Positions 26,364-58,849 of a DNA stretch of 64,000 nucleotides are shown in pieces. Under the pieces are notes generated by a model. It was not told the DNA's origin. It saw only the letters and a program-made list of their open reading frames with translations, and searched no databases. The stretch spans positions 142,529 through 206,528 of IMG/VR virus record IMGVR_UViG_3300025364_000003, one strand, 5' to 3'. How positions within the stretch are numbered: the first letter of the stretch is position 1; each line of letters starts with the position of its first letter. The position numbers and the translations under genes are program-made.

Positions 26364-26391
26364 AAAAAGCCACGTCTAACGTGGCTTTTTT
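26364..26391. terminator. Bidirectional intrinsic terminator
   Basis: AAAAAGCCACG-TCTAA-CGTGGCTTTTT between convergent genes. Confidence 0.8.
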
Positions 26392-26989
26392 ATTTAACTA
26401 ATTCAATTTCTATTTGAACCTCTGGAAATTCTTCCACAAGTTTTTCCGCAGCTTGTACATTAAACAGATTGTCATCGAAGAATCGTAGAATTTTTATATT
26501 TCCTTGTTGAAGCTTACCCCTCAGATATGCTTGTTTTCTTGCAGCGTTTAGCTCACCAACATCACCCGTAGGCGTGAAATCTCCAACTGCTACAACTTCA
26601 ACGTCCGGCATTCCTTGTTGGGATATGAATTCAATAATTTCATTGGCCGCTGGTCGTGCAGTACAAATAGAAACCCCGTAAGGTCCTAGACGCTTGTAGT
26701 CGGCTTTCATTCGATCAAAATGAGGTAAAGTAACAGGATTTAAAATAACTCCAAAGTCTGATAAATCAAATTCTTCATCATCCTTAAGATGATATTCATG
26801 AAATTCGTGCGGCGATAGTTCTCTTGTTTTACCAGTTGTCTTATTTATTAAGTGAACAGTGCCTTCTGTACTGCAAAGTGTATCGTCAAAATCATAAACA
26901 TTTAGCTCATTTGGTGCGTTATCAAATATTTCTCTCAATATTTTACTTGCATATTCTTTGATCAATATTTCTAATCTGGGCTTTGACAT
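26390..26989 (-). CDS. HAD-superfamily phosphatase with N-terminal leader helix
   Basis: Motif I YDFDDTL (DxDxT), motif II CTAR, motif IV FFDDN; leader LEILIKEYASKILRE. Confidence 0.8.
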   Translation of the reverse strand: MSKPRLEILIKEYASKILREIFDNAPNELNVYDFDDTLCSTEGTVHLINKTTGKTRELSPHEFHEYHLKDDEEFDLSDFGVILNPVTLPHFDRMKADYKRLGPYGVSICTARPAANEIIEFISQQGMPDVEVVAVGDFTPTGDVGELNAARKQAYLRGKLQQGNIKILRFFDDNLFNVQAAEKLVEEFPEVQIEIELVK

Positions 26990-27016
26990 ATTTTCATCCT
27001 AATTATCTCTGATGCT

Positions 27017-28300
27017 ATGTCCACTTTCACAACAATAATCAGACCAACACCTTTCGGCTTTTACGACTCAGATCCAATTTATCAATTGGATGCTGATAAA
27101 ATCATTTTTTATGTGCTGAGGAAACTGGGTGAGGATGTTCTTTCGGTTGAGCTCACCAAGAAGATGATATGGGCTTGTTTCGAGGAGGCCACATTAGCTT
27201 TTAACGCTCACATTATAGAATACCAAGCTAAGTCAAATCTTTCAAGTCTATTAGGACAAGCCACAGGTTCTGTTGATCCTAATAATCCTACAAATAACAC
27301 AGCAGAACTAAACATCAACCTTACGGACAATTACGTTCGTCCAAATCTTGATTTCCTTGTTCGCCAAGCGGAGCCATACGCCGCTGAAATAGGCTATGGA
27401 CAATCTTTAGATACTTTCAGCGGGTCTATCGATCTTCAAACTGGCAGACAAGACTATGATCTTTATACGGAATTAAAAAGCACCGCTGGGACACCACTTC
27501 TTCAGCTTATGCCAACAGGTTCTCGTGGAAGAATGAAAGTAGTCGAAGTTTTCCATTTTGGTCCTATCCAGTTTGTATATAACTCCAATCTTGCTTCCAA
27601 TTTCATTGCTTCTGGACTTCCGGTGGAGTCCTATGTTCCAGATACACGTTTTTATGTTCTTCCCTTGTTTGAAGATATTCTCAGAGCAGGCATGCTTGAA
27701 ACAGCTCAGAGAGTTAGACGTTCTCACTATCGTTACAGAATTGATGGTAGAAATCTCAGAATCTTCCCAGCACCAAGTCACCTCATACCCGGATTTAGCG
27801 ATAAGCTTTGGGTCCGTGTAGCATTTCCTCCATCAGTAGCGCCAGGCATTGTTCCCGGAGGCGGTGTTTCAAGTTCAATAGGTGGTGACGTAAACGGTGA
27901 ACTATTGCCTCCGCTTCCTGATGATACACTTTTTGGCGTTTCTCACCCAGCTAACGTACCATTTGGATTGATCAAATATCGTTCTCTAAACCCTTGGGCC
28001 AAACATTGGATTTTCCAATACACTCTTGCTCTTTGCAAAGAGTTACTTGGCTTGATCAGAGACAAATTCAAAAACTTCCCTATCCCAAATGCCGAACTTA
28101 CTTTGAATGGTGCCGATCTCATTCAGCAAGCACGTGAGGACAAACAAAACCTCCTTACTGGTGATGGTGGGTTGCTAAGTGTTCTCGACGGTCTCACCTA
28201 TGACAAGTTGGCTGAAATGAAAGCAAACACAGCAGAATTTGAAATGAAACAATTGCAAATGTTACCATTTCCGCCCAAATATGTTATTAGCTTCGGGTAG
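27017..28300 (+). CDS. Neck protein, T4 gp13-like
   Basis: LRKLGEDVLSVELT..ACFEEA, WIFQYTLALCKELLGLIR.KF..PIP.AELTLNG, ending VISFG. Confidence 0.75.
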   Translation: MSTFTTIIRPTPFGFYDSDPIYQLDADKIIFYVLRKLGEDVLSVELTKKMIWACFEEATLAFNAHIIEYQAKSNLSSLLGQATGSVDPNNPTNNTAELNINLTDNYVRPNLDFLVRQAEPYAAEIGYGQSLDTFSGSIDLQTGRQDYDLYTELKSTAGTPLLQLMPTGSRGRMKVVEVFHFGPIQFVYNSNLASNFIASGLPVESYVPDTRFYVLPLFEDILRAGMLETAQRVRRSHYRYRIDGRNLRIFPAPSHLIPGFSDKLWVRVAFPPSVAPGIVPGGGVSSSIGGDVNGELLPPLPDDTLFGVSHPANVPFGLIKYRSLNPWAKHWIFQYTLALCKELLGLIRDKFKNFPIPNAELTLNGADLIQQAREDKQNLLTGDGGLLSVLDGLTYDKLAEMKANTAEFEMKQLQMLPFPPKYVISFG

Positions 28301-28454
28301 GGGACAAACGTATCCTTTCATATAACCTATGAGTGCAAAGCTCAAAAATATAAAGGGTTACAAAGTTGATTTGGAAGGCAAGAATTAATTTCTTGCATTG
28401 GGTTAGTAGCTCTACTTATCAGTAGTTTATTATGATTAATGTTTGGATTAATAA

Positions 28455-28916
28455 ATGAAAATTTCCAAGAAACAAATAAGAACCTTGGTTCGTGAAGCAG
28501 TACGAGTGCAGCTTGATGAAATTTATGGCATTTCACAGTATGAACGTATGCTTGAGCTAAAACATCAATATGAAGACGACATTAAAGTTCTTGATAAGAT
28601 TGGTCCCGAATTATATCAAAAGATCATTGATTTTAGAGAACAGGCAAGTGATTTCAATGAATTCAAAAGGCTTGTGAGGGGCATGCCCGTTCACATGGCA
28701 AAGAAGTTTTGGGATCGCCAAATGGGCAAAGTTTCAACAGAGCGACTTGTGGAACTGCGTGATGAATGGGAAGAACTTAAAGATCGTTTCAAAGAGATAG
28801 ATGCAACAACAGAAGCTGACCGAGCTTATGGACGCAAGCGAACAAAAATTATTGATACAGAAACTGGTGAGGTCATTGGGACCGAAACGGACAAACGAGG
28901 CAGTCTGGGTTCCTGA
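28455..28916 (+). CDS. Hypothetical protein with KISKxQIR leader (putative internal head protein)
   Basis: MKISKKQIRTLVREAVRVQLDE. Confidence 0.65.
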   Translation: MKISKKQIRTLVREAVRVQLDEIYGISQYERMLELKHQYEDDIKVLDKIGPELYQKIIDFREQASDFNEFKRLVRGMPVHMAKKFWDRQMGKVSTERLVELRDEWEELKDRFKEIDATTEADRAYGRKRTKIIDTETGEVIGTETDKRGSLGS

Positions 28917-28925
28917 GGAGTTTCA

Positions 28926-29513
28926 ATGAATGCTCAGCTCGAAAAGCTTATTTGCGATATTCTAATTTTAGAATTTGCAGATCATATAAATGAAATAAAA
29001 GCAACAATCAACAGCGAACCTCCCACGTTTGAGCGTTGGTTGCAACATGTCGGCGGACTTGATTTTCTCGAAGATGAATTTCATGAATTTCGCAATGTAG
29101 ATGAATTGGAAGACTCGGAAGCATATGAAGACGCTTTAAGATTTGCCGAGGAGGAGTATGAACATCTTTTTGATAAATTTATCAACTTCTCCAATCCAGA
29201 AACACTATACCGTTGCATTAGTGCTCCAACCATATAGGATATAAATTTGTCAAAATTAGGAGAGTATTGGTCAGTTTTTCCTTCGCATCAAAGTTGTTAT
29301 CTTAGTAAAAATAAAAAGCACCCAAAATGGGTGGTAGCTGCAAATGTTCCATTGAATGGGATAAATTGGTATGAAACCATGACAGCTAACATGGGAACAT
29401 TTGCCGCCGAACAGGAAGTGACTTTATACAAGCATGCAGAAGTAGAGGTGCTTTACATCCTTGACAATAATGGCAAAAAACATAAGCCAAAACAAAAAAT
29501 TGGAATAATCTAA
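28926..29513 (+). pseudogene. ADP-ribosyltransferase-like protein interrupted by an in-frame TAG (29235-29237)
   Basis: ORFs 28926 and 29247 are in the same frame: LYRCISAPTI*DINLSKLGEYWSV...AAEQEVTL. R, S and ExE spacing resembles R-S-E ARTs. Confidence 0.55.
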
Positions 29514-30326: not shown

Positions 30327-30377
30327 ATTCTAAATAACCTCTTGGCCTACCTAATTATTGCTGAGAGGTAGGTCACC

Positions 30378-31082: not shown

Positions 31083-31106
31083 TGTTCATTCACTATAAAT
31101 TAAATT

Positions 31107-31598
31107 ATGGCACAAAATTCTATAAAGAAGCCGTCTAAGCCTCGACGTCGAAGAAGCAAAAAGAAAAGCGGTGGGAGGGGTCACTACAAAACCGGTTATC
31201 ACACTTCTCCTAAGTGTTCCAATGGCCCAGCAAAATATCGCTCTGGTTGGGAGAAAGTTGTTTGCGAAAGCTTGGATGCAGATCCGGATGTTGTAGAATA
31301 TCAATACGAACCTTTTGAGATCAAATACGTTTCTAATCACAGAACTGGAAGAATAAGAATCTACATTCCTGATTTCTTAATCACATACTCTTCCGGAGAT
31401 AGAAAATTGGTTGAAGTTAAGAGAGAGAAGCATCTTGAACGACCAACAGTCAAAAAGAAAGCGTTGGTTGCAAGAGCTTATGCAAGCCGTAACGGTATGG
31501 AGTATCAGTTTTGGACAGAAAAGAAAATCAAGGAACTCCAGAAGATGCTAAAGAGTTCGAAGACCTCTTTGACGAAAGCGAAGACGAACGAGAAATAG
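31107..31598 (+). CDS. Head-completion nuclease, T4 gp4-like (TnsA N-terminal-type endonuclease)
   Basis: YKTG, YRSGWE, YEPFEIKY, YIPDFL, LVEVK. Confidence 0.82.
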   Translation: MAQNSIKKPSKPRRRRSKKKSGGRGHYKTGYHTSPKCSNGPAKYRSGWEKVVCESLDADPDVVEYQYEPFEIKYVSNHRTGRIRIYIPDFLITYSSGDRKLVEVKREKHLERPTVKKKALVARAYASRNGMEYQFWTEKKIKELQKMLKSSKTSLTKAKTNEK

Positions 31599-32179
31599 TA
31601 GACATAGGTCTCGATATTTCCACAAGTATTGTTGGTCTTGTAGTTTTGAATGCAACCACCAACGATCTTATCAAGATGGATGCAATTAAGCTCACCAGCA
31701 AAAAGTATTCAGATACCTGGGACAAGGGGACTCGTGTTGAAAAGGAACTTGCTAGGATTGTTGATCTAGAAAAGTATGTTGTCAACCACATTTTTGTGGA
31801 AGAAGCTCATATGAAGTTTACGCCAGGATTTTCTAGTGCAAAGACTTTGTTTTCCCTTGCATGCTTCAACGGTATTGTTTCATTTACAGCTTATAAGTTG
31901 TTTGGTGTGAAACCAAAAATGATCAATGTAAGAACTGCTCGTAAAAACCTTGGGATTAAGATCAACTATAAGGACAAGTCCAAGGACACTAAAACAAAGA
32001 TATTTGAAGCGGTCAAAAAAATGAACCCGCATTTCCCGTGGGCTAAACATGTAGCTAAAGGTGGAAAGAAAAAAGGTCAAACTGTGTGGAGTAAACACAA
32101 TTTTGATATGGCAGATGCTTGGATTATATGCGAAGGCGGTCGTCGAACAATAAACCCTTCTGGTAAAAAGAAACGCTAA
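31511..32179 (+). CDS. RuvC-like Holliday junction resolvase
   Basis: IGLDISTSIVG, IFVEE, FDMADAW; TTG start with GGAG SD inside the upstream gene. Confidence 0.78.
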   Translation: MDRKENQGTPEDAKEFEDLFDESEDEREIVDIGLDISTSIVGLVVLNATTNDLIKMDAIKLTSKKYSDTWDKGTRVEKELARIVDLEKYVVNHIFVEEAHMKFTPGFSSAKTLFSLACFNGIVSFTAYKLFGVKPKMINVRTARKNLGIKINYKDKSKDTKTKIFEAVKKMNPHFPWAKHVAKGGKKKGQTVWSKHNFDMADAWIICEGGRRTINPSGKKKR

Positions 32180-32180
32180 T

Positions 32181-32563
32181 ATGGAACCTGGTGATATCGT
32201 TGTAGCAAAACGGTTAATATACCATGAAGGAATCAATATCAAAGGTGTTTGGTCATCTCCTAGTAGTCATGAATCAAATCTTGTTTTGGCGATAAAATTT
32301 CTGTTTATTCTCATAAAGAAGCTTATTTGTTTACCGTATTGAGTGAAGGGCGTACGTTAGAAAAACATTATTCGGGTTATGAAGAATTTTCTAAAGAAGT
32401 TCTTCATGTTTCTAAAATTAAAGGGATGGTAATTGACTTCGATCCATTGGGTTCAAAAAGACCCCATATTGAAGGAATAGCAGCAGTTTTAATTGAAGAC
32501 AAGGTTTGGTGGATAGTTGCTGGCGATCTTCAAGTAGTAAAGTTAGGCAAGGGTAAGCAATGA
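32181..32563 (+). pseudogene. Hypothetical protein split by a -1 frameshift at T4 (32284-32287)
   Basis: ATG 32181 gives MEPGDIVVAK...ESNLV; continues in the -1 frame as GDKISVYSHKEAYLFTVLSEG (ORF 32327). Confidence 0.5.
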
Positions 32564-33207
32564 GTGCAACCGGAAGAAAAAAACACAACTCTAAAGGGAA
32601 GGCCGAAGAACGTGATCCTTTCGATTATTATCCTACGCCAAATTGGTGCATAAAACGCTTTGTAGAAAAAGCATCGCACAGGTTGCCAGTTGGTAATTGG
32701 ATTGAACCAGCAGCTGGCGATGGCGCAATCATACGTTCTATCACCTCTTATGGTAAGGGATATGAGAAAGTTCAATGGACTTCGGTTGAAATTCAAGATA
32801 GATTTAAAGAATCGCTTGAGGAAGTATCTGATAAAGTTTGTATTGGAAATTTTGCGTCTTATTTACATCCAGGCTCAAAAGCCGACGTGTGCATTACCAA
32901 TCCTCCATACAAACTTGCTGAGTCAATGATTAAACATGCACAGACTCAGGCTAAATCCGTTGTTATGTTGTTGCGAATTAACTTTTTGGCAAGTGAAAAA
33001 AGACGTGATTGGATGGAACAAGATACTCCTGACATTTATGTTATTCCAAATCGTCCTTCGTTTCGTGGTAAAGGTTCTGACGCTACTGAATATGCTTGGT
33101 TTGTGTGGGACGATAAATCGTGTGGTAGAATTTTCATACTCGATTCAACGCCTCGGGGCGTGCGACAAGCAGAAAAGAAGGCTTTGAGACAAAAGCAAAC
33201 TATTTAA
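32560..33207 (+). CDS. Phage DNA N6-adenine methyltransferase
   Basis: DYYPTP, IEPAAGDGAI (SAM-binding), ITNPPY (catalytic), SDATEYAWFVW. Confidence 0.85.
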   Translation: MSATGRKKHNSKGKAEERDPFDYYPTPNWCIKRFVEKASHRLPVGNWIEPAAGDGAIIRSITSYGKGYEKVQWTSVEIQDRFKESLEEVSDKVCIGNFASYLHPGSKADVCITNPPYKLAESMIKHAQTQAKSVVMLLRINFLASEKRRDWMEQDTPDIYVIPNRPSFRGKGSDATEYAWFVWDDKSCGRIFILDSTPRGVRQAEKKALRQKQTI

Positions 33208-33214: not shown

Positions 33215-33961
33215 GTGTTACTCAAAGAATATATAAACTATCAAGTTGCTAGTGTCTTGCTCGAAATCAGAGGCACGTTCAAGTGGAATGAATTTAAGGC
33301 ACTTAGTACCCTAGACCAAAAACTTCAATACGCTCAACAACATCTCAAGGAGCTTGGAAGAGGTAGCAGCAGGGCTGCCTTCCTACTAAGCAATCGATAT
33401 GTTTTAAAGATTGCCCTTCCTCAAGCGGCAGAAAAGGGAATGGGGCAGAACAAAGGCGAGCTTCAGGTCTTTGCTAATACGGCAAGCAAGAATTATGTAA
33501 CCGCTATTCATGACGCTGGCGAAGATGGCCATTGGCTCGTTTCAGAAATTGCACGACCACTTGCAAGCACAGAAGAATTTCAGAAGCTCACAGGGGTTCC
33601 CTGGGAACAGTTTGTTTCTATACTGAAAAATCATGAAGATATCAAGAGTGAATTTAGCGAGATCGAACAGGGCATTCAAATGTGGTCTCGTCGTCTCAAA
33701 AATGCTCAATCGCAGGGTAATGAAGCGGGTATTGACAAGTTTACAAAGAACGTTCAAAACCTTCAGCAAAGAAAAACAAACCTTCAAAAAATGTTAAATT
33801 CACCAGTGGTACAAGGTGCTCTTGCTTTGATGAATCAAGCTGGTGTTATGCGTGGTGATATTCTTGAAGTGGATCATTGGGGCAAAACCGCTGATGGTCG
33901 TGTAGTTCTATTAGACTACGGCTTTACAGAGGACTTGGTTGACCTTTACCGAGCTGCATGA
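33215..33961 (+). CDS. Protein-kinase-like fold protein, paralog 1
   Basis: Gly loop LGRGSSRAAF, VLKIA lysine, QNKGE helix-C Glu, GDILEVDHWG catalytic loop, VLLDYG. Confidence 0.8.
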   Translation: MLLKEYINYQVASVLLEIRGTFKWNEFKALSTLDQKLQYAQQHLKELGRGSSRAAFLLSNRYVLKIALPQAAEKGMGQNKGELQVFANTASKNYVTAIHDAGEDGHWLVSEIARPLASTEEFQKLTGVPWEQFVSILKNHEDIKSEFSEIEQGIQMWSRRLKNAQSQGNEAGIDKFTKNVQNLQQRKTNLQKMLNSPVVQGALALMNQAGVMRGDILEVDHWGKTADGRVVLLDYGFTEDLVDLYRAA

Positions 33962-43035: not shown

Positions 43036-43140
43036 ATGAAGGGTCTACTCCACCGTTTAATAAATCTTTTCAACTCTGAGCACTGTTGCTGCTGTTGTGG
43101 CTGCTGTCAGTGCCGGAACTGCAAGGGCAGCTGTAAGTGA
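43036..43140 (+). CDS. 34-aa Cys-rich peptide (metallothionein-like composition), not in ORF track
   Basis: AGAGAGGT SD; MKGLLHRLINLFNSEHCCCCCGCCQCRNCKGSCK; TGA stop overlaps the GTG start of the next gene. Confidence 0.7.
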   Translation: MKGLLHRLINLFNSEHCCCCCGCCQCRNCKGSCK

Positions 43141-43991
43141 ATGATAGGGATAGAATACAAGGATTCATTTCTGACTTAGTCAAAGAAGAATTGACTGAGG
43201 TATCTCCTGTATTTTATCCCACAATCAAAAAGGGAATAGAAGCTGGCCGTGAGGCTTCTCGTAGACAGGCTTCGGCCTACAGGGGAAGGCACGGCCAAAC
43301 CTTTTCTGATGAACTTGCTCAAATACGTCGAGATTCCAAGCGTAAAAGGGATAGGCATCATAAGATGCTGTCGCTTTCCAAGCATCTGAAAAAAGTTTTC
43401 GGAAATAATGCATATGGTGGCTCTGCACTTGCCACTGTAGAAATTTCTAACGATTTTAAAGCTGATGTTAAAGCTGAATTTGTGAGCGTTATGGGAATTG
43501 ATAATGTCAAGTTTGTAGTTTCAATAAAGAAAAACGGCAAAGAAATTCTTACCAAAGAATTTGTTGCTGGATTAGGGGCAAAACAAAGTGTAGCAAGGTT
43601 CATTAAGAAATTTCAGGAAAAATTGCAAGAGGATGCAGCAATGAAGGTTACGAAAGCGCAACTAAAAGAAATGGTCCGCAAGATCATTAGAAAAAAATTA
43701 ACAGAAATGGATCTTGGTGAAAAAAGTCGATCTACTACAGGGGCTGACAGGAGGATGAGTCCATCTCAACTTGAAAAGCATCTTGAAAAGGAAAGAGAAA
43801 GATCAAAACAAGCCAAGGTTGTTAAAAAACGACAAGCAATGAAGCAATCGGCTCGTGGTATGGAATTAGAGAGTCGCATAGATATTGATCGAGATGTTGA
43901 CAACGAAGAAATGGTTGATGCTAAAGAAGAAGAATATCTTACCAAGCTCGAAAAGTTAATTCTTCAAAGTGAAAAGGAAGGGCTTTGCTAA
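43137..43991 (+). CDS. Hypothetical protein with two leader-like helices (putative internal head protein)
   Basis: IQGFISDLVKEELTE at the N-terminus; MKVTKAQLKEMVRKIIRKKLTE from 43641. Confidence 0.65.
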   Translation: MNDRDRIQGFISDLVKEELTEVSPVFYPTIKKGIEAGREASRRQASAYRGRHGQTFSDELAQIRRDSKRKRDRHHKMLSLSKHLKKVFGNNAYGGSALATVEISNDFKADVKAEFVSVMGIDNVKFVVSIKKNGKEILTKEFVAGLGAKQSVARFIKKFQEKLQEDAAMKVTKAQLKEMVRKIIRKKLTEMDLGEKSRSTTGADRRMSPSQLEKHLEKERERSKQAKVVKKRQAMKQSARGMELESRIDIDRDVDNEEMVDAKEEEYLTKLEKLILQSEKEGLC

Positions 43992-43992
43992 A

Positions 43993-44550
43993 ATGACTAC
44001 TATAAAACAAATAATTGAAGAAGCTGTCAAGGAAGCACTTGACCCAGTTGGGAAAACTGAAACGGGGAAAAAGGTAGGGGTCGGTCAAATTCGTGACATC
44101 GACAACGATGGTGATATTGATAGTTCTGATGCGTATCTTGCATATCGTCGAAAAAAAATTACACAGGCAATGAAAAAAGAAGATCGTGAACTCAATGAAA
44201 AAACAATGACTTGGGGTGATCTTCCATCGGAAGATGTTTTTGAAGATTTAATGGATGGCAAAGCTTTCAACATGAAACTTCAGGGTGCCGACTCTCTTGC
44301 GTTTGAATATGCCATGACTCTATCTGATAATCCAGGAGCGGGAAGTACAGCATCTGCGGGCAGTCTTAGAGCTACCATAGAAGCCCTTATCAACGCTCCA
44401 GAGCCAGACGAACTTTCTGATGACCAATACGAAGAGGTTGAAAATGTTCTTGACGAATGGAACGACAGATACGGGGATGTGAGCATTGAAGAAACTGCGT
44501 GGTCTTTGGCTTCTGGTATTATGGAAGTCCTTGGAATTGAATGGATTTGA
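43993..44550 (+). CDS. Hypothetical protein with DxDxDG EF-hand-like loop
   Basis: MTTIKQIIEEAVKEAL leader; DIDNDGDIDSSDAYL. Confidence 0.65.
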   Translation: MTTIKQIIEEAVKEALDPVGKTETGKKVGVGQIRDIDNDGDIDSSDAYLAYRRKKITQAMKKEDRELNEKTMTWGDLPSEDVFEDLMDGKAFNMKLQGADSLAFEYAMTLSDNPGAGSTASAGSLRATIEALINAPEPDELSDDQYEEVENVLDEWNDRYGDVSIEETAWSLASGIMEVLGIEWI

Positions 44551-44559: not shown

Positions 44560-45054
44560 ATGCCAAAGAGTAAATATCCAAAAAGCGTACAAGATCTACC
44601 AGAAGACGACTACAGTCAGTGGACGGCAGTTTATCACAGTGCACGTGACGGGGGCGACAGCAAAGAAACCGCAGCAAAAAAAGCTTGGGGTGCTGTTAAG
44701 GAATCCGGCTTGCAAGAAAGTGGTGAAGATAATCCATGCTGGGATGGTTACGAAATGGTCGGTATGAAAACCCAAAACGGGAAAGAAGTACCTAACTGCG
44801 TTCCGAAAAATGAATCAAAAAAACCTGTACGTATTTCAAAAACGCAGCTTAAAGAAATGGTAAAGCGGGCCGTTAGAAATCAATTACAAGAGGCTTCCAC
44901 TGTTCGAAAGCGTCAAATGATACTTGATCGGTTTAGAACCGAAGCAAACCTTTCAACTTATGAATTGCTAGAAGACGTCCTTGAATTCATTGATGAAAAG
45001 ACTTGGCAGAAAGTATTGCAGGGCATTGGTAACAAATATGGTTATCGACTTTAA
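44560..45054 (+). CDS. ChaB-like domain fused to a PCWxGY..VPNCVP module
   Basis: YPKSVQDLPE...YHSA...ETAAKKAWGAVK; PCWDGYEMVGMK..GKEVPNCVP; RISKTQLKEMVKRAVRNQLQE. Confidence 0.65.
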   Translation: MPKSKYPKSVQDLPEDDYSQWTAVYHSARDGGDSKETAAKKAWGAVKESGLQESGEDNPCWDGYEMVGMKTQNGKEVPNCVPKNESKKPVRISKTQLKEMVKRAVRNQLQEASTVRKRQMILDRFRTEANLSTYELLEDVLEFIDEKTWQKVLQGIGNKYGYRL

Positions 45055-45126: not shown

Positions 45127-45618
45127 ATGAAGCTTAATAGAACACAATTCAAGAAAATTTTAAAAGAGTGCATCAGAGAATTAATAACAGAAGGTGCATT
45201 TGACAATGTAATCAAAGAAAATGTTCAACCAGTTGCTGCAACAGCTAGGGTTGCTCCAAATGATTTTGTAGGACAGGTTACTAAAAATTCTACCACGGCG
45301 CAACCACCATTCTCTTCTGTTGGTCATATGACACCAAATGAAAGACTTAGGGAACTTTCTCGTATTGCAGCTATGCAGACCGCTCAAGGTGACCCAAAAC
45401 AAGCTGCAATGATGGAAAGTATTTTTGCAGACACGGCAATGACGACCCTACAATCGCAACTTGGAACAGAAATGGGCGGCGGAGGTGGTGTTTATCTCGG
45501 CGAACAAGCAAGTCCAGAGGTAGAACAGATTGATCAGGCCCAACTAAATGCTCTTAGTGGCGACCGTCCAAAAAATCATTGGGCAGCTTTAGCATTCGGA
45601 AAGTATGAGAATAAGTAA
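45127..45618 (+). CDS. Hypothetical head-associated protein
   Basis: MKLNRTQFKKILKECIRELITE leader; upstream of the scaffold gene. Confidence 0.65.
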   Translation: MKLNRTQFKKILKECIRELITEGAFDNVIKENVQPVAATARVAPNDFVGQVTKNSTTAQPPFSSVGHMTPNERLRELSRIAAMQTAQGDPKQAAMMESIFADTAMTTLQSQLGTEMGGGGGVYLGEQASPEVEQIDQAQLNALSGDRPKNHWAALAFGKYENK

Positions 45619-46221: not shown

Positions 46222-48483
46222 ATGACAGATCTTTTTACAGAAGCAGTAAGGGACGCTGAAAAGCTTAAGGAAATCGCAGAGGCCGATGCGAAGAAAGCCT
46301 TAATTGAAGAACTCACCCCTTACATTAAAAAAGTAATTGCGAAGGAAGCTATGGGTTCCTCGGACTTCTTCTTTGAACAGGAAGATGAAGAGGAGGTTTC
46401 GCCTCAACTACCACCAGACCCTCAGGGTATGGGTGGTACACAACCAACCACTGCTCCAGCCGGCACAACTGATCCGACTCAAACGGTTGCAGGAGAGCTT
46501 GGCGATCAAACAGTGGACGCCCCAGTTCCTGCACCTGGCGGTGAGGATTTGGTTGGTGCTTCTATGCCAGATGAAGATGGAAAGATCGTTGTTGATTTCG
46601 AAGATCTTTTTGTAGACGCTGACTCGGATCAGGTTACAATTACGCCTGGAGAGGCACCACTCCAAGCAGCAGGTGCTCCAGCAGGTGCACAGCCAACTCA
46701 GCCGACAGAGCCAGCTGCTGTGCCAGCTCCAGAAACTGCTGGTCCAGCAGCACCAGTTCAACCAGCTGCTGGTGAGCCAACTGAAGAAGAAGAGGAAGTT
46801 GCACCGCTTCCAACAGAGGCGGTTTCTTATAAAGAATACAATAGGGTCCTTAGTAATATTTCTGAACGGATTGATCGAGCTTATTTCTCAGGACGAGTTT
46901 CTGACATCACGAGAAGTTCTCTTAAAAAGAGACTTTTTGATTTAGTCGAAGCTTTGGATGGAATGCGAGATCGGGGCCTAATTACTAACAAACAAGCTCG
47001 TCTCAACGAAAACAAGTTAGAATTTTTATTCTTAAAGCTGAAAGAGGCAGGTTTGGATAATAGTTACTTGAAGAAAGAACAAGGTAAAGGTACCGATATG
47101 ACAAGTCTCAAAGAATTTGCAGCAAAACTTTTCGAGGAAGATGAAAACCTCGCTAAGGATTCTGCTCACACTGGCGAGTCCGGTTTGAAAGTTGATGACG
47201 AATATTCACGTCACGCAGCTGATGTATCTGGTGTTGATCCACATCTTGGTGGTCCCGAAGACGTTGAAGTCGCTCAGGAGGGCAAGCTTGCCGAAGAGAT
47301 GAAGGGTGGAACCGCTGGCTCTGTTGATGCAGATGCAATTAGTGGCGATGTGCACGATCGTCCTTGGGATGAGGCCGAGCCTGTTGTTGATGAGGAAGAT
47401 CAGGATCAAACCGTTACTCGTTCAATGAATGAGAACAGCGCAGACGCAAACACTGATGCAAATGATGACGTTGCAGAAGGTGCAGCTGGCTTTGGTGACA
47501 CTAACGAAGAACCAGTCGCAGAGTTTGAAGTTGATGACGCCGAACTTGCAGAGGCAGTAAGGGCAATCCGCAAGGAAAATATCAAACGTAAGCTTGATGC
47601 TCTTAGAGAAGCTTCCGACGGCAAAGAAGCAGAGTCATGGGAAGATGCCGAACCAGAAGGTGGTGATGACGGTTCCCATGAGAACCTTGAGGACAGGAAA
47701 CATAAGAGCAATCTTAAAATGAAAGAAAGCATGTACGAAATGGATATGATGGAAGATGATGACCTTGGTGTTGATGATGCCGCAGATCTTGTTCTTTCGG
47801 TAGACCTTCCGCCAGAGGTTGAAGAAGAGTTGGCAGCACTTGGTGTTGATGATCTTGACGTAGACGTTGATCTCAATGTAGGTGCTGAGGATGAGGAAGT
47901 TGAAATCGTTGATGACGAGGATGACGAAATGGATGTTGACCTTGGTGGCGACGTAGACGATATGGAATCCGCAGAAGAAGACATGGTTCTTGCAGATGAG
48001 ATGGAAGAGGCAATGCACATGGAATCCCGTAAGTTCAAACACCTCGCACGTAAGAACAGACTTCTTGAAAAGAAGCTCGCAAAGGCTGTCAAGCTTCTTG
48101 AAGCAAGAGGCAAGCAGGTTGAAGGATTGAACAGACAGCTCGCAGAGACCAACTTGTTCACTTCAAAGACAGTTTACTACAGCAAATTCCTTCAGAGAGC
48201 ACTCTCTGAAAAAGCACTCACCAAGAAGGCTCTACAGCAAATTGTCGAGCACCTTGACAAGGGTGCATCCGTAGCCGAGACAAAGGCTATTTACACAAAA
48301 ATTAAGCGCAGGCTCGACGAGCATGCATCAGCTTCCCGCAAATTGGGTGGTTCTTCCTCTAAGGTGACCAAACCAGGGAGCGCAAACCTCACTGAGGCCG
48401 CTCAGCCACAGGCAGGTCATGATTCCAATGGCCAATCCGCAAATCGCTGGCAGGTACTTGCCGGGATCAAAAAGGTTGACTAA
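46222..48483 (+). CDS. Prohead scaffold/core protein, T4 gp22-like
   Basis: Very acidic; coiled-coil C-terminal region (QLAETNLFTSK..Y, QIVEHLDKGASVAETKAIY); ends RWQVLAGIKKVD; immediately upstream of the capsid gene. Confidence 0.8.
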   Translation: MTDLFTEAVRDAEKLKEIAEADAKKALIEELTPYIKKVIAKEAMGSSDFFFEQEDEEEVSPQLPPDPQGMGGTQPTTAPAGTTDPTQTVAGELGDQTVDAPVPAPGGEDLVGASMPDEDGKIVVDFEDLFVDADSDQVTITPGEAPLQAAGAPAGAQPTQPTEPAAVPAPETAGPAAPVQPAAGEPTEEEEEVAPLPTEAVSYKEYNRVLSNISERIDRAYFSGRVSDITRSSLKKRLFDLVEALDGMRDRGLITNKQARLNENKLEFLFLKLKEAGLDNSYLKKEQGKGTDMTSLKEFAAKLFEEDENLAKDSAHTGESGLKVDDEYSRHAADVSGVDPHLGGPEDVEVAQEGKLAEEMKGGTAGSVDADAISGDVHDRPWDEAEPVVDEEDQDQTVTRSMNENSADANTDANDDVAEGAAGFGDTNEEPVAEFEVDDAELAEAVRAIRKENIKRKLDALREASDGKEAESWEDAEPEGGDDGSHENLEDRKHKSNLKMKESMYEMDMMEDDDLGVDDAADLVLSVDLPPEVEEELAALGVDDLDVDVDLNVGAEDEEVEIVDDEDDEMDVDLGGDVDDMESAEEDMVLADEMEEAMHMESRKFKHLARKNRLLEKKLAKAVKLLEARGKQVEGLNRQLAETNLFTSKTVYYSKFLQRALSEKALTKKALQQIVEHLDKGASVAETKAIYTKIKRRLDEHASASRKLGGSSSKVTKPGSANLTEAAQPQAGHDSNGQSANRWQVLAGIKKVD

Positions 48484-48538: not shown

Positions 48539-50461
48539 ATGAAGACTTTCACTTTAGAGCAACTCGCAGAAGGCGTACACCGTCGCTCGCTTGGTGCAGA
48601 CTCACCACGACTCGTAAAGAAGTGGGGAGCAACTGGTCTTCTTGAGGGCCTAAAAGGCATGAACCGAGATGGCATGGCACGTCTTCTTGAGAACCAGGCA
48701 GCTGAGCTTCTCAAGGAAACCAACGCTTTGTCCCTTGGTGGTGCTTCTTTGACCTCAAGCGGGAAGATTGCAGGTTTCACAAACGTTGCATTCCCAATCG
48801 TTCGCCGTGTTTTCGCAGGTTTGATTTCAAACGAGATCGTGTCGGTTCAGCCAATGAGCCTTCCAACCGGTCTTCTTTTCTACCTCGATTACACTTACGG
48901 CAGCTCGGTTGGTGGTGACGCAGGAACCGCAGCTAACCAGTTTGCAACAACTAGCGTTGTAGATCCATCAACTTACACCAGCCAGGATTCCGTATACAAC
49001 AACCCACGTGGTGTTGGCGTACGTTCTGGTTCTCTTGCAACCGGTGGACAGTATGACCTTGTAGGTCATGGTTACTCCAAGGTTCACAAGCAGAGCCGTT
49101 TCCTTTCTGGTTCAACCGACTCTGTTGGTTACTGGGCATCTGGCTCCATTTGGACCCCAGGTGGCACAGTAGACACCGCTGATGACTTCGAAGGTCTCAA
49201 CGCACGTTTCGTCATGTACGATACTCGTGTTGAAAACGACCTTACCGATGGCGTACTTGATTACTGCTTCGTGTTTGTCAGCGCATCTGAGTTTACCGAC
49301 AAGATCAACGGTGCTGACCTCAACAACCTCAACCAGATTGCACTCACCGGTTTCGGTGCAGCAACCAACTCTGCTGTTGAGTGGGGAGAGAAGTATCAAG
49401 GTGGTCGAGGCGTGCTTAACCTTCGTCAGATGAACCAGCGTGGTAACTGGAACTCAGCAACTGGTATCTTCACACCAGATCCGCTTAACGGTTCACACGT
49501 GCTTCACGTAGTTCGTCTTGCAAATGCAGGTACCGCACCAGCACCTGATGGAGCTGTCGGTAATGCAGTAACTGCTTCGGCAGCTATCGCAGACGCACTC
49601 AGCGTAAACTCTGACGGTTCAACTCTTACGATTCCAAGCTTCGAGTCTGACTTCGCAGTCGACGCAAGCCCACGTATCCCAGAGGTTGACATCCGCATTG
49701 AGTCCACCAGCGTTACGGCACAAACCCGTAAGCTCAGGGCTCGTTGGTCGCCAGAAATGGCTCAGGATCTCACAGCATTCTACTCAATCGATGTAGAAGT
49801 TGAGCTTACAAACATTCTCTCCGAGATGATTACGCTTGACATTGACCGTGAAATCTTGAACGACCTTCTCACCCAGGCAGGAGCAGCAAACCTCTACTGG
49901 TCCCGAGCACCAGGTAAGCTTGTCAACAAGTTCACCGGCGCAGAGGCTCTCCAGAGCAGCACGCTTTCTCCAGGCCCAATGGCATTCGTAAACATTCAAG
50001 AGTGGTACCAGACCCTCCTTGAGACTGTTACGGACGCAGCAAACACCATTCACCGTAAGACACTCCGTGGTTCCGGTAACTTCATTGTTACTTCCCCAGA
50101 TGTCTGCACCATCCTTGAGCACCTTGTTGCCTACAAGCCTTCCTACAGAGTAGATGCTGACGGTCAGGTTCGTGACAACATGGTAATCGGAGCAGAGGCA
50201 GTTGGTACTTTGAACAACCGTTACACGGTCTACAAAGACCCATATTTCCCAAGCAACAAGCTCTTGATCGGATTGAAGGGTAACACCTTCCTTGAGTCAG
50301 GATTCATCTACGCACCATACGTGCCACTTATCCTTACTCCAGTTATCTACGCTCAGGAAGACTTTACTCCACGTAAGGGCGTCATGACCCGATACGGTAA
50401 GAAGATGGTCAGAAATGACTTCTACGCAACCGTAACTGTTCTTGACATGGGTATAATTTAA
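48539..50461 (+). CDS. gp23: Major capsid protein, T4 gp23-like
   Basis: KKWGATGLLEGL, FPIVRRVF, SVQPMSLPTGLLFYLD, TRKLRARWSPE.AQDL, EITLDIDREIL, YAPYVPL, FTPRKGVMTRYGK. Confidence 0.96.
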   Translation: MKTFTLEQLAEGVHRRSLGADSPRLVKKWGATGLLEGLKGMNRDGMARLLENQAAELLKETNALSLGGASLTSSGKIAGFTNVAFPIVRRVFAGLISNEIVSVQPMSLPTGLLFYLDYTYGSSVGGDAGTAANQFATTSVVDPSTYTSQDSVYNNPRGVGVRSGSLATGGQYDLVGHGYSKVHKQSRFLSGSTDSVGYWASGSIWTPGGTVDTADDFEGLNARFVMYDTRVENDLTDGVLDYCFVFVSASEFTDKINGADLNNLNQIALTGFGAATNSAVEWGEKYQGGRGVLNLRQMNQRGNWNSATGIFTPDPLNGSHVLHVVRLANAGTAPAPDGAVGNAVTASAAIADALSVNSDGSTLTIPSFESDFAVDASPRIPEVDIRIESTSVTAQTRKLRARWSPEMAQDLTAFYSIDVEVELTNILSEMITLDIDREILNDLLTQAGAANLYWSRAPGKLVNKFTGAEALQSSTLSPGPMAFVNIQEWYQTLLETVTDAANTIHRKTLRGSGNFIVTSPDVCTILEHLVAYKPSYRVDADGQVRDNMVIGAEAVGTLNNRYTVYKDPYFPSNKLLIGLKGNTFLESGFIYAPYVPLILTPVIYAQEDFTPRKGVMTRYGKKMVRNDFYATVTVLDMGII

Positions 50462-50645: not shown

Positions 50646-51539
50646 ATGAAAATATTTTTACACGGATATGCAAATAAGCGTGGTATTTATAAAATTACTA
50701 ATACAAAAAATGGACGTTATTATTATGGATCCGCTTCTCGTTTAAAAGAACGAGCTTATTCTCATCGGGACGATTTGCGCAGAAATAGGCATGCGAATTT
50801 GTTTTTACAAAGAGATTATAACAAATGTGGCGAAGATGCATTTATATTTGAAGCAATAGAAACAGTAGATGGAGCCAGGGAAGAACAACTCGCTAAAGAA
50901 CAGGCTTACCTTGATAAATTTTTTGATGGAGGAAACGAATGTTACAACCTTTGTCCAAAAGCAGAAAGTAGAGAAGGTAGCAAAAATGTTCGTCCATTTA
51001 ACCCAGAAACAGACGGGCGAGTAACATCACGAACGCCAGAAGTGTGTGCTATTGTAAGCAAGAAAAACAAAAAGACGTGGAACACACCAAAGAAAAAAGA
51101 AGAAGCTCTCAAGAACGCTCAAAAGCGTTGGGATAACCATTCTGCTGATGTAACCGTCACCAATAAAAAGACTGGTGAAACTGTTACCATTGAAGGTTCT
51201 GTCAGGTCTTGGTGCCAAGAAAGAAATCTCTCTTATAAGTCATTTCATTTAATGCTCAAAGGCAAGACTAAATCTTCAGGCGGTTGGTTTCTTGGCACGG
51301 AAGAACCGACTTACGTGGAACGCAAGGGTGAAAAAAGAAAACCTTTGTCGGATGAACATAGAGCCAAGATAGCGGGTGGTAAATATGCTGGTGTTGTCTT
51401 GAAGAACAAGGTGTCTGGTGAGATGTTTGTGGTTGGTGAGAATGCCAAAGCTGATTGCCGTGAGCGTGGCATTTCATATTCAAGCTTTGCAAAAATGATG
51501 AGTGGTAAGTGTAAAAGTGCTTCTGGTTGGATAGTCTAA
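50646..51539 (+). CDS. Free-standing GIY-YIG homing endonuclease
   Basis: GIYKITNTKNGRYYYGSA..R, HAN..LQRDYNK.GEDAF, EQAYLD, YNL; two C-terminal SYxSF..M..GK.KS..GW repeats. Confidence 0.9.
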   Translation: MKIFLHGYANKRGIYKITNTKNGRYYYGSASRLKERAYSHRDDLRRNRHANLFLQRDYNKCGEDAFIFEAIETVDGAREEQLAKEQAYLDKFFDGGNECYNLCPKAESREGSKNVRPFNPETDGRVTSRTPEVCAIVSKKNKKTWNTPKKKEEALKNAQKRWDNHSADVTVTNKKTGETVTIEGSVRSWCQERNLSYKSFHLMLKGKTKSSGGWFLGTEEPTYVERKGEKRKPLSDEHRAKIAGGKYAGVVLKNKVSGEMFVVGENAKADCRERGISYSSFAKMMSGKCKSASGWIV

Positions 51540-53528: not shown

Positions 53529-53798
53529 CTATTTCTTTTCTATTCTAAAAACCAGTGGTCTCTTGCAATTTGGACCTTTAATAACCCTGTGCCATGTCTT
53601 GGATTTAATAAACAATGTTCCTTCCATTAGCTTGGGTATTTCATTGTCGTATTGGAACCACCAGTCATCAGCTTGCATTACTTCAACAATTCGGTCTTCT
53701 TTATCTCGGTGCCAAACCAACTCTTCCGAATCGACATTTGGGTCGAACTCACGGATTACAACATTAGTTGATAACGTCTTTTCTTTGAACGGAAACAT
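53529..53798 (-). CDS. Small cupin-like conserved phage protein
   Basis: ELVWHRDKEDRIVEV...WHRVIKG; TAATG-coupled start at 53798. Confidence 0.7.
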   Translation of the reverse strand: MFPFKEKTLSTNVVIREFDPNVDSEELVWHRDKEDRIVEVMQADDWWFQYDNEIPKLMEGTLFIKSKTWHRVIKGPNCKRPLVFRIEKK

Positions 53799-54403
53799 TA
53801 CCACCAACGATACGATTTAGATGCGCCTGTCAATGACGGATAACGACCAATTCTACATGACCAGTAACCTGCGGTACAACGATCGTTTTTATCCTCACAA
53901 TTGTGTCTAGCGGCAAAAGATTTTCGGCGTTCAGGATCTGATACTTTCACACTCATATCTGGTGAACCAAAGGAGATTTTCTTGACTTTATCCCCGCATT
54001 TTTGATAAACATAAAACTTTTTGGATCCACCACGCTTTGGTTTGCCAAGTTCAACATCTTTTCCTTGATACTCGGCCTCATCAAGCATTTCGCTTCCTTC
54101 GATCATCGGAATGCCGAGAGGAACTTTTTTGTTTTCGTAGATGGCAAACTCACCAACGCCTTGTTCGATCAATTCTTTTTCTTGTTCAGAGAGTTGAATT
54201 TTGCCTTCGGTGTAAAGTTCTTTCATTTCCCTCATTAGGGAAAAGAACGCTTTCGACTTTACACGATAAATGTTGTCATAAAAACTGATACCATTTTCAA
54301 GATGAAATCGCATTCCCTCTGACAAGACACGCCCATACTTGTTCTTTTCAATCTCTTCTTTGACAAGCTTGTTAATTTCTTCTTCCAGTGTTTGTTTTGC
54401 CAC
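53798..54403 (-). CDS. Conserved phage protein with leader helix
   Basis: LEEEINKLVKEEIE; KKFYVY..VKKISFG...ERRKSFAARHNC...AGYWSCR. Confidence 0.7.
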   Translation of the reverse strand: MAKQTLEEEINKLVKEEIEKNKYGRVLSEGMRFHLENGISFYDNIYRVKSKAFFSLMREMKELYTEGKIQLSEQEKELIEQGVGEFAIYENKKVPLGIPMIEGSEMLDEAEYQGKDVELGKPKRGGSKKFYVYQKCGDKVKKISFGSPDMSVKVSDPERRKSFAARHNCEDKNDRCTAGYWSCRIGRYPSLTGASKSYRWW

Positions 54404-55696: not shown

Positions 55697-55702
55697 GCAC
55701 GT

Positions 55703-56548: not shown

Positions 56549-56551
56549 TAA

Positions 56552-56941: not shown

Positions 56942-57022
56942 GGAGTTCGATGATAAACTTTTTTATTTGACTATTTATATCTACAGGATTTCATACGAAT
57001 CTTCAAAAAACCGTTGCAACCA

Positions 57023-57029
57023 CTATTTA
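57023..57029 (+). promoter_or_regulatory. Candidate late-promoter element CTATTTA (representative copy, upstream of tail tube)
   Basis: CTA(A/C/T)TTA recurs within ~7-60 nt upstream of many virion genes (see findings). Confidence 0.5.
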
Positions 57030-57056
57030 AGCAAAGGAACAGTCGGAGAATAAACA

Positions 57057-57548: not shown

Positions 57549-57589
57549 AATATATTTGTTCGCAGTACACAAATATCAAACAACATGGT

Positions 57590-57623
57590 AAACTCTCCTT
57601 AGAAGACAGTTCAAGGAGAGTTT
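57590..57623 (+). promoter_or_regulatory. Hairpin sequestering the SD of the downstream HNH gene
   Basis: AAACTCTCCTT (57590-57600) pairs with AAGGAGAGTTT (57613-57623); GTG start at 57625. Confidence 0.7.
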
Positions 57624-57624
57624 T

Positions 57625-58470
57625 GTGTTTAAGTGCCCTTTGTGCAAAAACCAATATGAAAAACTTATTTCTTTGTCTGTCCATTACAGAAAAGGGCACA
57701 AGAAAAAGTCAAAAGATTTAATTGTTGACTTGTATTACAATGGCAGAGAGCCCACGTGTGCTTGTGGTTGTGGCGGGGAAGTAAAATTTCTTGATATAAC
57801 TCGTGGGTTTCGTGAATTTATTCATGGACACGCAGCACGCATACCAGAAAAAAATAATTTTGTTTCAAACAAAGCCCAACAAAACAGCGCTAAAACACGT
57901 AAAAAGATGATTGAAAGTGGAGGCTGGAAACCATTTCACCTAAAAGAAACTAGTGAACATTGGGGCAAAGGTTTATCAAAAGAAACCGACGACCGCATAG
58001 CCAAAATGGCTAACTCCATTAAAACAAATAAAGTTGAAATTGAAAAACGTTCAAAACGTATGCGCAAAGGACGTTTAGATGGAACAATACCGACACTTCA
58101 CAAAGAGAACCATAGCCAATGGAAAGGTGGTATCAGCCCACTAAATCAATATTGTCGTAGTAGTATTAAACTTTATTCAAATTGGAAATATCCTTTGCTT
58201 AAAGCGGCAAAATTTCAATGTGTCATGTGTAAAAAACCTGGTCCTGGCTTGGAAATACATCACAACAAAGAAACAATGTCTTCCATAATTCGTAAATTTG
58301 CTAAAAAATTTAAATGGGATCATTATTACAACAGCAATGCACCAGCAAATGATCAAAATTTGATTAATATCAAAGATCAAATTGCAGAAGCCGTTGCTGA
58401 CTACCACATTCAAAACAATGTGTCCGGCGTTGTCCTGTGTTCCAAATGTCACAGTAAAGAACATAACTAA
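57625..58470 (+). CDS. Free-standing HNH-type homing endonuclease with N-terminal zinc finger
   Basis: CPLC..HYRKGH, CACGCG..FIHGHA, SQWKGG, CVMC...EIHHNKE...VVLCSKCHSKEH. Confidence 0.8.
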   Translation: MFKCPLCKNQYEKLISLSVHYRKGHKKKSKDLIVDLYYNGREPTCACGCGGEVKFLDITRGFREFIHGHAARIPEKNNFVSNKAQQNSAKTRKKMIESGGWKPFHLKETSEHWGKGLSKETDDRIAKMANSIKTNKVEIEKRSKRMRKGRLDGTIPTLHKENHSQWKGGISPLNQYCRSSIKLYSNWKYPLLKAAKFQCVMCKKPGPGLEIHHNKETMSSIIRKFAKKFKWDHYYNSNAPANDQNLINIKDQIAEAVADYHIQNNVSGVVLCSKCHSKEHN

Positions 58471-58489
58471 TTTCAGCTTTGCAACCCAG

Positions 58490-58520
58490 AAAAGACCTGG
58501 CCAAAAGCCAGGTCTTTTCT
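58490..58520 (+). terminator. Intrinsic terminator
   Basis: AAAAGACCTGGC-CAAAA-GCCAGGTCTTTT. Confidence 0.8.
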
Positions 58521-58543
58521 ATTTAAGCTTGTCGGAGTATGAA

Positions 58544-58849
58544 ATGAAAATAACCAAGTCACAACTTAGAGAAATGATCCGAGAAGCCATCAATGAACAG
58601 GTTGGCGGAAACGATATTCTACAACAAGACTTAGGAGGAGAAGGAAAAGAGCTTCTCGATACTTTTATTCAATCTATGGATGAAGCAGTACAAGCTTGGT
58701 ACGCATTACACTATTGGCTTGAACCGTCTGAAGAAGCAGATGTAGCAATGTTACAAGAGTTAGGTAAGGAAGTCGGGAATTTTATTGTTGATGAGAACTT
58801 GACTGCATGGCTTAACAGCCTTGCAGAAAAAGCAAAAGCTGACAAGTAA
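58544..58849 (+). CDS. Hypothetical protein with KITKSQLRE leader
   Basis: ATG 58544 with GGAG SD: MKITKSQLREMIREAINEQ. Confidence 0.7.
   Translation: MKITKSQLREMIREAINEQVGGNDILQQDLGGEGKELLDTFIQSMDEAVQAWYALHYWLEPSEEADVAMLQELGKEVGNFIVDENLTAWLNSLAEKAKADK

Follow-up and report, generated by a model that had tools for sequence, protein, structure and literature searches.

A helical leader peptide in the head gene module of an uncultured myovirus and its possible role in capsid targeting

Do unrelated phage proteins that begin with similar helices carry an address for the capsid, and if so, which proteins carry it? The question is raised by a stretch of 64,000 nucleotides from IMG/VR record IMGVR_UViG_3300025364_000003 (positions 142,529 to 206,528; hereafter the window), which is part of a large uncultured myovirus genome. 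A preliminary description of the window had noted a recurrent N-terminal helix on several small proteins as well as on three kinases, a HAD phosphatase and ADP-ribosyltransferase (ART)-like proteins, and had read it as a head-targeting propeptide that lets enzymes enter the host with the DNA. Here we explore this leader family in order to identify its members, their neighbourhood and the roles the leader could have. The leader helix is real and previously undescribed: a literature search for the motif found nothing.

The source phage may be a T4-like huge phage of a globally distributed, aquatic clade with genomes that include one of about 460 kb. By DNA it has no close cultured relative, since a search for near-identical DNA among GenBank phages gave 0 matches. 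The nearest capsid proteins are those of an uncultured 484-kb phage (48% identity), Flavobacterium phage immuto (45%) and Microcystis phage Mel-JY01, and at least 598 IMG/VR contigs encode a capsid protein 54-89% identical to that of the window. At its end the window agrees with two IMG/VR contigs, one of 206,528 and one of 460,987 bp; about 110 kb of the latter were covered by the analysis. Related loci were compared for the first 80 (labelled L001, L002 etc.), and the related phage DNA amounted to 2 Mb.

The leader has a consensus of about 22 residues, M-K-[ILV]-[ST]-K-x-Q-L-[KR]-E-[MIL]-[IV]-[KR]-x-[AC]-[IV]-x-x-x-[LI]-x-E. A six-frame screen of the window with the strict pattern [KR][ILVM][STN][KR].Q[ILFM][KR] gave exactly five matches, all on the + strand and in long open reading frames (ORFs), with the first K at 28458, 43644, 44830, 45130 and 58547. 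All five copies are coding, three N-terminal and two internal:

28455..28520, + strand: leader copy 1, MKISKKQIRTLVREAVRVQLDE, N-terminus of the 153-aa ORF 28455-28916; 42.2 bits, p<0.0005
43641..43706, + strand: leader copy 2, MKVTKAQLKEMVRKIIRKKLTE, inside ORF 43137-43991 (basic, 284 aa), from residue 169
44827..44892, + strand: leader copy 3, VRISKTQLKEMVKRAVRNQLQE, inside ORF 44560-45054, from residue 90, after ChaB-like and Cys-rich parts
45127-45192, + strand: leader of the archetype gene 45127..45618, MKLNRTQFKKILKECIRELITE followed by G
58544..58609, + strand: leader copy 5, MKITKSQLREMIREAINEQV, N-terminus of the acidic 101-aa ORF 58544-58849; 47.3 bits

A hidden Markov model (HMM) seeded with the five copies was run against 18,864 ORF segments. 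It recovered the five at E-values of 3.6e-12 to 3.5e-10, together with dozens of copies from related contigs, and after three iterations in the related phage DNA they remained the only window matches with E<1. All-against-all comparison of 72 N-termini gave 16 pairs scoring at least 36, where shuffles predict 0.25; these pairs fall into the leader family, a second family with the motif RWxxLAGL, the kinase paralogs and two sheath paralogs. A short core of the leader, h..hh[KR]E[EA]h, was counted 7 times where 0.13 were expected. It joins the N-terminus of 43137, 43993 and 54403(-) to 28455 and 58544, is also found twice within ORF 17546-20089, and is not matched by the kinases, the HAD protein, 28926 or 29513. 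The motif thus stands far above shuffled N-termini, as the preliminary description had expected of it. The membership it had proposed holds for 28455, 45127 and 58544, which carry the full leader, and for 43137, 43993 and 54403(-), which carry the short core; the HAD protein, 28926, 29513 and the kinases are at chance level. The short-core carriers are:

43155..43199, + strand: short-core leader, IQGFISDLVKEELTE, N-terminus of ORF 43137-43991; the L001 homolog has a full leader at the same position
43993..44034, + strand: truncated leader, MTTIKQIIEEAVKE, N-terminus of ORF 43993-44550, acidic, with a DxDxDG-type module
53798..54403, - strand: short core only, LEEEINKLVKEEIE, N-terminus of a 201-aa ORF; phrog_7595, function unknown

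Individual N-termini were scored with a leader profile made from 16 accessory copies against composition-preserving shuffled N-termini, which amounts to 72 tests. ORF 43993 scores 7.9 bits, above all 2,160 shuffles; for 54403(-) the full-leader HMM gives p=0.009, not significant after 72 tests.

The seven DNA copies of the leader vary freely at synonymous sites. Since synonymous positions differ among the copies, selection acts on the leader peptide and the leader is not a DNA repeat. The helices of the true members are amphipathic (hydrophobic moment, muH, 0.55-0.66), and all five window copies end in [LI]-x-E, a site of the T4 gp21 type (LDE, LTE, LQE, ITE and INE). An amphipathic helix ending in LxE is found at 7 of 70 N-termini and in 9 of 500 internal windows (muH >= 0.5), a threshold set post hoc and not relied on. 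All copies lie on the strand of the structural genes, in or beside head and tail genes, and three of the five are located in the head module between the sheath genes on one side and the scaffold and capsid genes on the other. Further N-terminal copies occur just past the window (L083:7581, L083:8372 and L257:12137).

The internal copies have leader-first counterparts in relatives. In L002 the homologous C-terminal half of 43137 is a separate gene with the leader first, and an internal translation start at 43641 is possible in the window too, judging from a Shine-Dalgarno-like AGAGGA 7 nt 5' of its ATG. The C-terminal 75 aa of the 44560 ORF form a stand-alone, leader-first gene in both L001 and L002; in the window the copy at 44827 is no translation start because its first codon is GTA.

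One carrier stands out, the gene that we call the archetype. It precedes the scaffold position and the capsid gene:

45127..45618, + strand: archetype, conserved small head-module protein; C-terminal HWAALAFG at 45577-45600
46222..48483, + strand: acidic protein of 753 aa that occupies the scaffold position, with the conserved prototype of the RWxxLAGL family as its C-terminus (NRWQVLAGIKKVD, 48445-48480)
48539..50461, + strand: T4-type major capsid protein (PF07068, E 2.5e-78)

Orthologs of 45127 were identified in 28 of the first 80 related loci, and a PF03420 protease, the family of T4 gp21 homologs, in 45 of the 80. In 153 of 198 protease-bearing loci a gene of the 45127 type starts within 1.5 kb downstream of the protease, with the N-terminus M(A)K[LV][ST][KR]xxLKx[IL]VKEC[LI]VE[IL]L[AS]EG, and 45127 is the ortholog of this gene. 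Of 107 distinct orthologs, 104 have L, I or V at position 20, 101 have E at position 22 and 88 have G at position 23, with position 21 variable; this L-x-E-G at the helix end is the pattern that would be expected of a P3-x-P1/P1' protease site. The N-terminus of 45127 is best explained as the oldest and most conserved instance of the leader. An AlphaFold model of the protein places a helix at residues 5-22, stopping at the Glu of the predicted site, the remainder being helical or disordered at low confidence; beyond the helix the modelled protein would resemble scaffold-like proteins in this low-confidence helix and disorder. A small head-module protein of cultured phage immuto begins MKKSQIVKAVQEVLEE. 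A tblastn search of cultured phages with a distant 45127 ortholog gave 0 matches, as did the ortholog profile against PDB sequences.

Between 45127 and the scaffold gene lies a conserved Gly/Pro-rich protein of 176 aa (45673-46203), probably disordered and present in at least 16 related loci. It was considered as the prohead protease on grounds of T4 synteny and rejected as a Gly/Pro-rich, low-complexity protein.

What the leader is attached to differs from carrier to carrier. The leader is conserved and the cargo unrelated, and the other cargo proteins have the leader alone in common. Neither 28455 nor 58544 has cargo with a homolog in the 80 related loci, even where the capsid protein is 87-89% identical, and the 28455 cargo matches no Pfam, PHROG or ESM Atlas family. 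No enzyme domain was detected in window cargo with Pfam or PHROG, and in the cargo of ten relatives Pfam gave no enzyme family apart from an HD domain, below threshold, that precedes an internal leader (L007:14245-15264). By these searches the cargo consists of small, fast-diverging or hypervariable proteins without a recognisable enzyme domain.

The same picture was obtained on a larger scale. A 30-column leader profile searched against 1.84 billion cluster representatives identified 291 proteins at E<=1e-3, and the best 150 of these, with a median length of 144 aa, were analysed in detail. They contain 189 leader copies, 124 at residue 1 and 65 internal; 53 of the 65 internal copies start with M, I, V or L, and 41 of the 150 representatives have more than one copy. 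The tripeptide [LIVM]xE is phase-locked in these copies, with 119 occurrences at register 20, 69 at register 16 and no more than 5 in neighbouring registers. Pfam showed no recurrent enzyme family among the 150, single marginal hits only. Two of the world-wide leader proteins were looked up on their contigs, which are shorter than 1 kb and gave no gene context.

A tag removed by a protease requires that protease in the same genome. Phmmer with T4 gp21 and the family HMM detected none in the window, 4 kb beyond it or 10 kb before it; 10-kb walks from both window ends yielded no protease either, two scans of related loci did not bring it to light among the matches listed, and a degenerate DNA pattern gave only 8 other contigs. 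A profile protein search returned more than 8,000 matches. The enzyme, P0420, was found by a single-sequence search for homologs of a relative's protease, on the JGI record that also carries the region just past the window:

404,724-405,344 of JGI contig 3300005974 Ga0081520_100001 (460,987 bp): P0420, gp21-family (PF03420) protease, preceded by a T4-type portal gene with an intein and by a gene for 291 aa

P0420 shares 32% identity with T4 gp21 (E 8e-18), and GELDH and GISSR are retained around the catalytic His85 and Ser140, as numbered by our own count on the T4 sequence. Capsid residue E60 (48716-48718, ELLKE/T, the slash marking the cut) aligns with E65 of T4 gp23, FLTE/A, the maturation cleavage site of that protein, and is invariant in 8 sequences including T4. 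ELLKE/T is the predicted maturation site of the window's capsid protein. The FLTE/A site of T4 agrees with a 65-residue propeptide reported in the literature (PMC5694885).

On the contig segment with P0420 (L258), the gene after the prohead protease, at 10667-10984, encodes a thioredoxin and not the core protein, and a Cpn60/GroEL-like gene follows 4 kb downstream (14939-16606). The portal gene that carries the intein has a GIY-YIG gene beside it.

The archetype is not the only prohead-core protein whose terminus recurs elsewhere. The RWxKLAGI C-terminus of the acidic scaffold-position protein (about 700 aa) is kept by almost all relatives and by cultured immuto, where the scaffold ends RWQKLAGIIK. 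Six N-termini in the window (52341, 55718, 59382, 59596, 60047 and 61777) carry RWxxLAGL...[LIV]xE, a copy of this scaffold C-terminus, and 45127 itself ends in [NKH]W[AS]xLAF, which is related to it. Both leader families thus resemble the termini of prohead-core proteins, which suggests that both may derive from prohead-core contact peptides.

By analogy with T4 internal proteins, the leader could be a capsid-targeting tag that a protease removes, a reading to which we give about an even chance. In this lineage of huge phages the helix would have been copied onto at least eight small, fast-diverging proteins, either at the N-terminus or between two modules. It would dock its carrier to the scaffolding core during prohead assembly. 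The prohead protease would then cut at the phase-locked [LI]-x-E at registers 8-10, 12-14, 16-18 and 20-22, and cleavage would free the cargo inside the head and break the leader into small peptides. The T4 capsid-targeting sequence MKTYQEFIAE acts in this manner. The Glu predicted to precede the cut is E22 in 28455 and 45127 and E18 in 58544; in T4, replacing the Glu by Asp blocks cleavage. The cargo might either stay and be ejected with the DNA, as T4 internal proteins are, or be expelled, as scaffold is. For five to eight small non-enzymatic proteins the idea of head targeting, put forward in the preliminary description, seems plausible on this comparison: three of the five full copies lie in the head module, the archetype family neighbours the protease in relatives, the helix ends in [LI]-x-E, the same genome encodes the protease and the capsid Glu is in place. 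For the enzymes the idea is not supported. Wider and more tentative, and in our view somewhat improbable, is the proposal that phages of this clade use two portable address tags from both ends of their prohead core (the MKITKSQLKEM...LxE helix and the scaffold RWxxLAGI) to load dozens of hypervariable proteins into the capsid, where the protease would release them; this would be a modular, evolvable packaging code that can be read from sequence in hundreds of protein clusters.

Several observations weigh against a capsid tag. Internal copies, which make up two of the five in the window and about a third of those world-wide, are unlike a classical capsid-targeting sequence (CTS). The tripeptide [LI]xE arises by composition in any K/E/L/I-rich helix. 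Much of the cargo is acidic, where T4 internal proteins are basic. In the window's genome the protease gene is not adjacent to 45127, being about 370 kb from the window end in record coordinates. Three of ten leaders weakly match PF25734, a putative antitoxin family, below threshold, which hints at another role. Finally, no virion proteomics of a cultured relative, immuto included, was found in the literature searched.

The main rival to the capsid tag is that the helix is a general N-terminal module, for example for coiled-coil oligomerisation or nucleic-acid binding, of a large superfamily of fast-evolving small phage proteins, unrelated to the capsid, the head-module location of some copies being incidental. 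The frequency of internal and repeated leaders (65 of 189 copies; 41 of 150 proteins) fits such a module, as do the heptad-like hydrophobic spacing of the helix and the many carriers in tiny-gene arrays that resemble accessory regions. The matches of the three leaders to PF25734 (RelB_like_antitoxin; a literature search on this family found nothing) reach 13.6-17 bits; they would favour it as well, yet all lie below the 27-bit cut-off and there is no conserved second helix of a ribbon-helix-helix fold. A general module also leaves unexplained the fixed protease and scaffold neighbourhood of the best-conserved copy, the near-invariant L-x-E-G at the helix end, and the second leader family that copies the scaffold C-terminus. 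On balance we judge it unlikely.

The earlier reading, in which the leader sits on three kinases, a HAD phosphatase and ART-like proteins that are packaged, injected and modify the host as T4 Alt does, concerns the following ORFs:

26390..26989, - strand: HAD-type phosphatase-like protein, VYDFDDTL at residues 31-38 (DFDDT 33-37), with a 30-residue N-terminal helix extension
28926..29513, + strand: ORF called ART-like, its frame interrupted by an in-frame TAG at 29235-29237
33215-33961, 33958-34755 and 34780-35489, + strand: three tandem protein-kinase-like paralogs, not leader-family members

The enzymes themselves are partly substantiated. The kinase paralogs conserve LGEGSSR (the Gly-rich loop), VLK, DHWGK and LLDYG and have no Pfam hit. 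An AlphaFold model (pLDDT 85.7) has kinase-fold proteins for almost all of its top 50 PDB fold matches (APH, MTR kinase, PRPK, PknB), and these matches are modest, with a best E of 4.5e-3 and a TM of about 0.3 in PDB and a TM of 0.44-0.46 to Pkinase and RIO clusters in the Atlas. A protein-kinase-like fold of the 33215-35489 proteins is thus supported by modelling. The HAD protein has motif I DxDxT and matches phrog_415 (polynucleotide kinase/phosphatase) at E 2.7e-6, without a Pfam hit; its N-terminal extension is found in the L003 homolog and missing in that of L010, a suggestive difference, but is not tied to the leader by sequence. The ART-like call for 28926-29513 found no backing: neither piece matches Pfam or PHROG, and the best Atlas score, 0.76, comes without a named family. 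Stop-codon recoding of the TAG at 29235 was considered and rejected, as TAG ends 14 of 72 genes and the window has no tRNA.

The graft of the leader onto these proteins did not hold up. Leader-profile p-values against shuffled N-termini are 0.0065, 0.06 and 0.2 for the kinases, 0.2 for the HAD protein 26989(-), 0.02 for 28926 and 0.012 for 29513, none of which survives 72 tests, and neither the kinases nor the HAD protein enter the iterated leader HMM. The N-terminal helix of the kinases contains L-x-E, which together with the one paralog at p=0.0065 speaks for a leader; yet it is hydrophobic and not amphipathic (muH 0.10-0.13), conserved across the kinase family in other phages and contained in the phrog_4301 profile. 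For these reasons it is part of the kinase family and no graft. The enzyme genes do lie among structural genes on the same strand, and the HD-domain part upstream of the internal leader in L007 would be in keeping with enzymatic cargo, but the 150 world-wide leader proteins have no enzyme family beyond single marginal hits. We regard packaged effector enzymes as very improbable here; membership of the kinase-like, HAD and ART-like genes in the leader set is not supported. The negative result matters, as on present evidence these genes do not merit annotation as packaged effectors.

In the same region, the third kinase paralog is frameshifted near 35058, its downstream frame reading ...VAPFVSQIFDYD in agreement with the paralogs; the frameshift could reflect a pseudogene, an assembly error or a programmed event. 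A TnsA-like endonuclease, a RuvC-like resolvase and a DNA methyltransferase (31107-33207) lie between the neck/tail genes and the kinase cluster.

That the leader similarity is a by-product of composition or of translational selection on first codons (A-rich MKITK starts), with no functional peptide behind it, has a next to negligible probability: phage genes frequently have an N-terminal MK and early codons rich in A, and K/E/I/L-rich helices look alike, yet scores far exceed the composition-preserving shuffles, controls that already contradict it, conservation is position-specific across 22 residues, internal copies exist and synonymous sites vary freely.

One further protein with leader-like helices was left outside the finding:

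17546..20089, + strand: mosaic 847-aa protein, leader-like helices at residues 14-35 (KQFRELEKRAVRHEQILQEAG), 611-626 and 692-705

A leader candidate within this ORF scores 6.4 bits (p=0.0005). The helices lie between short conserved modules (SAYANAYA..WYK; GLGKWF...HPECG...YPKCV), and the kinds of module recur in 43993 and 44560 (phrogs 22379, 4359, 38880, 27331 and 23735). Two large proteins of the same genome begin with the short core and have no Pfam hit on record: L257 13213-15297(-), 694 aa, FFLKKLIKEEV, and L258 18752-20437(-), 561 aa, NIIKKLVKEEV.

The other structural genes of the window encode a gp19-like tube, a gp15-like protein, a neck adaptor and a tandem pair of sheath paralogs (36858-39917 and 39974-43003), each with about 1,010 aa and far longer than T4 gp18. 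Directly 3' of the capsid gene is a GIY-YIG endonuclease gene (50646-51539), an arrangement like that of segD directly 3' of gene 23 in T4. As for expression, a GC-rich hairpin with a T-run and, at once after it, CTATTTAA[GA] stand just 5' of genes 58544 and 61473 (58490-58526 and 61438-61468) and could be a terminator-promoter cassette. Before 58544 the octamer that follows the hairpin is CTATTTAAG, which is also found 5' of the tube gene 57057 (57023-57030). As a late-promoter motif, CTATTTAA was rejected with 5 matches against 2.8 expected, not significant; sigma-70-like sites are not enriched around the leader copies (20 found, 32.6 expected).

If the leader is a capsid tag, the virion-internal and possibly ejected proteins of a large and common uncultured clade would become predictable from sequence, which is now left to proteomics of cultured phages. 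The T4 CTS principle would then cover a defined module of 22 residues whose protease sites are phased, and the origin of the leader would be tied to the prohead core. The leader could also serve as a short laboratory tag for loading foreign proteins into these capsids, as the T4 CTS does.

Four known systems invite comparison. PF25734 shares with the leader an alignment of three of ten leaders to profile positions 4-23 of 43, and 2 of the 150 world-wide representatives match it at up to E 1.2e-5. The likeness is confined to positions 4-23 or 4-29, no leader matches the full 43-position profile above the gathering threshold, and the window offers no toxin partner or antitoxin context.

Scaffolding proteins of the P22 and phi29 type have a C-terminal coat-binding peptide. 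RWxxLAGL is similar in copying the conserved C-terminus of the scaffold-position protein, to which the W..LAF end of 45127 is related. Its sequence is unrelated to the P22 scaffold, its binding to the capsid protein is putative, and its accessory copies are N-terminal and not C-terminal.

The giant phages phiKZ, 201phi2-1 and SPN3US likewise have huge genomes (here a 461-kb contig), head-protein propeptides, multiple cuts after Glu and paralogs with near-identical N-termini; for giant phages, head-protein paralogs whose N-termini are identical, or nearly so as in gp53 and gp54 of SPN3US, and several sites after Glu have been described (PMC5694885). In these phages gp21-like proteases make the cuts after Glu. 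Their propeptides are mostly longer than 100 residues and have an A/S/G-x-E motif, whereas the window leader is short and well delimited and occurs in hundreds of protein clusters. The window phage also belongs to another clade, with immuto and Mel-JY01 as its nearest cultured relatives.

The closest parallel is the T4 CTS of IPI, IPII, IPIII and Alt, which gp21 removes. Both are short peptides, N-terminal in T4 and in most leader copies, that start with MK and have [IL]-x-E at residues 8-10, both sit on unrelated, fast-evolving cargo, and both occur with a gp23-type capsid protein, a gp21-family protease and a homologous Glu for capsid maturation. T4 IPIII and IPII begin MKTYQEFIAE/A, matching the leader at residues 1, 2, 8 and 10 (M1, K2, [IL]8 and E10), a match of pattern only in a peptide too short for statistics, with no demonstrable sequence homology. 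In T4 targeting needs no more than the first 10 residues, residues 8 and 10 govern processing (PMC9026906), and the CTS is the only conserved part of diverse internal proteins (PMC3012670). The window leader is unlike it in having about 22 residues against 10 and several phased [LI]xE, in being internal or repeated in about a third of cases, in its much acidic cargo, and in its archetype 45127, a conserved core gene that T4 lacks; packaging and cleavage would here be by analogy. Given its greater length, its several phased sites, its frequent internal or repeated placement and its origin in a core gene absent from T4, the leader is best seen as a variant on the CTS theme and not as a member by descent.

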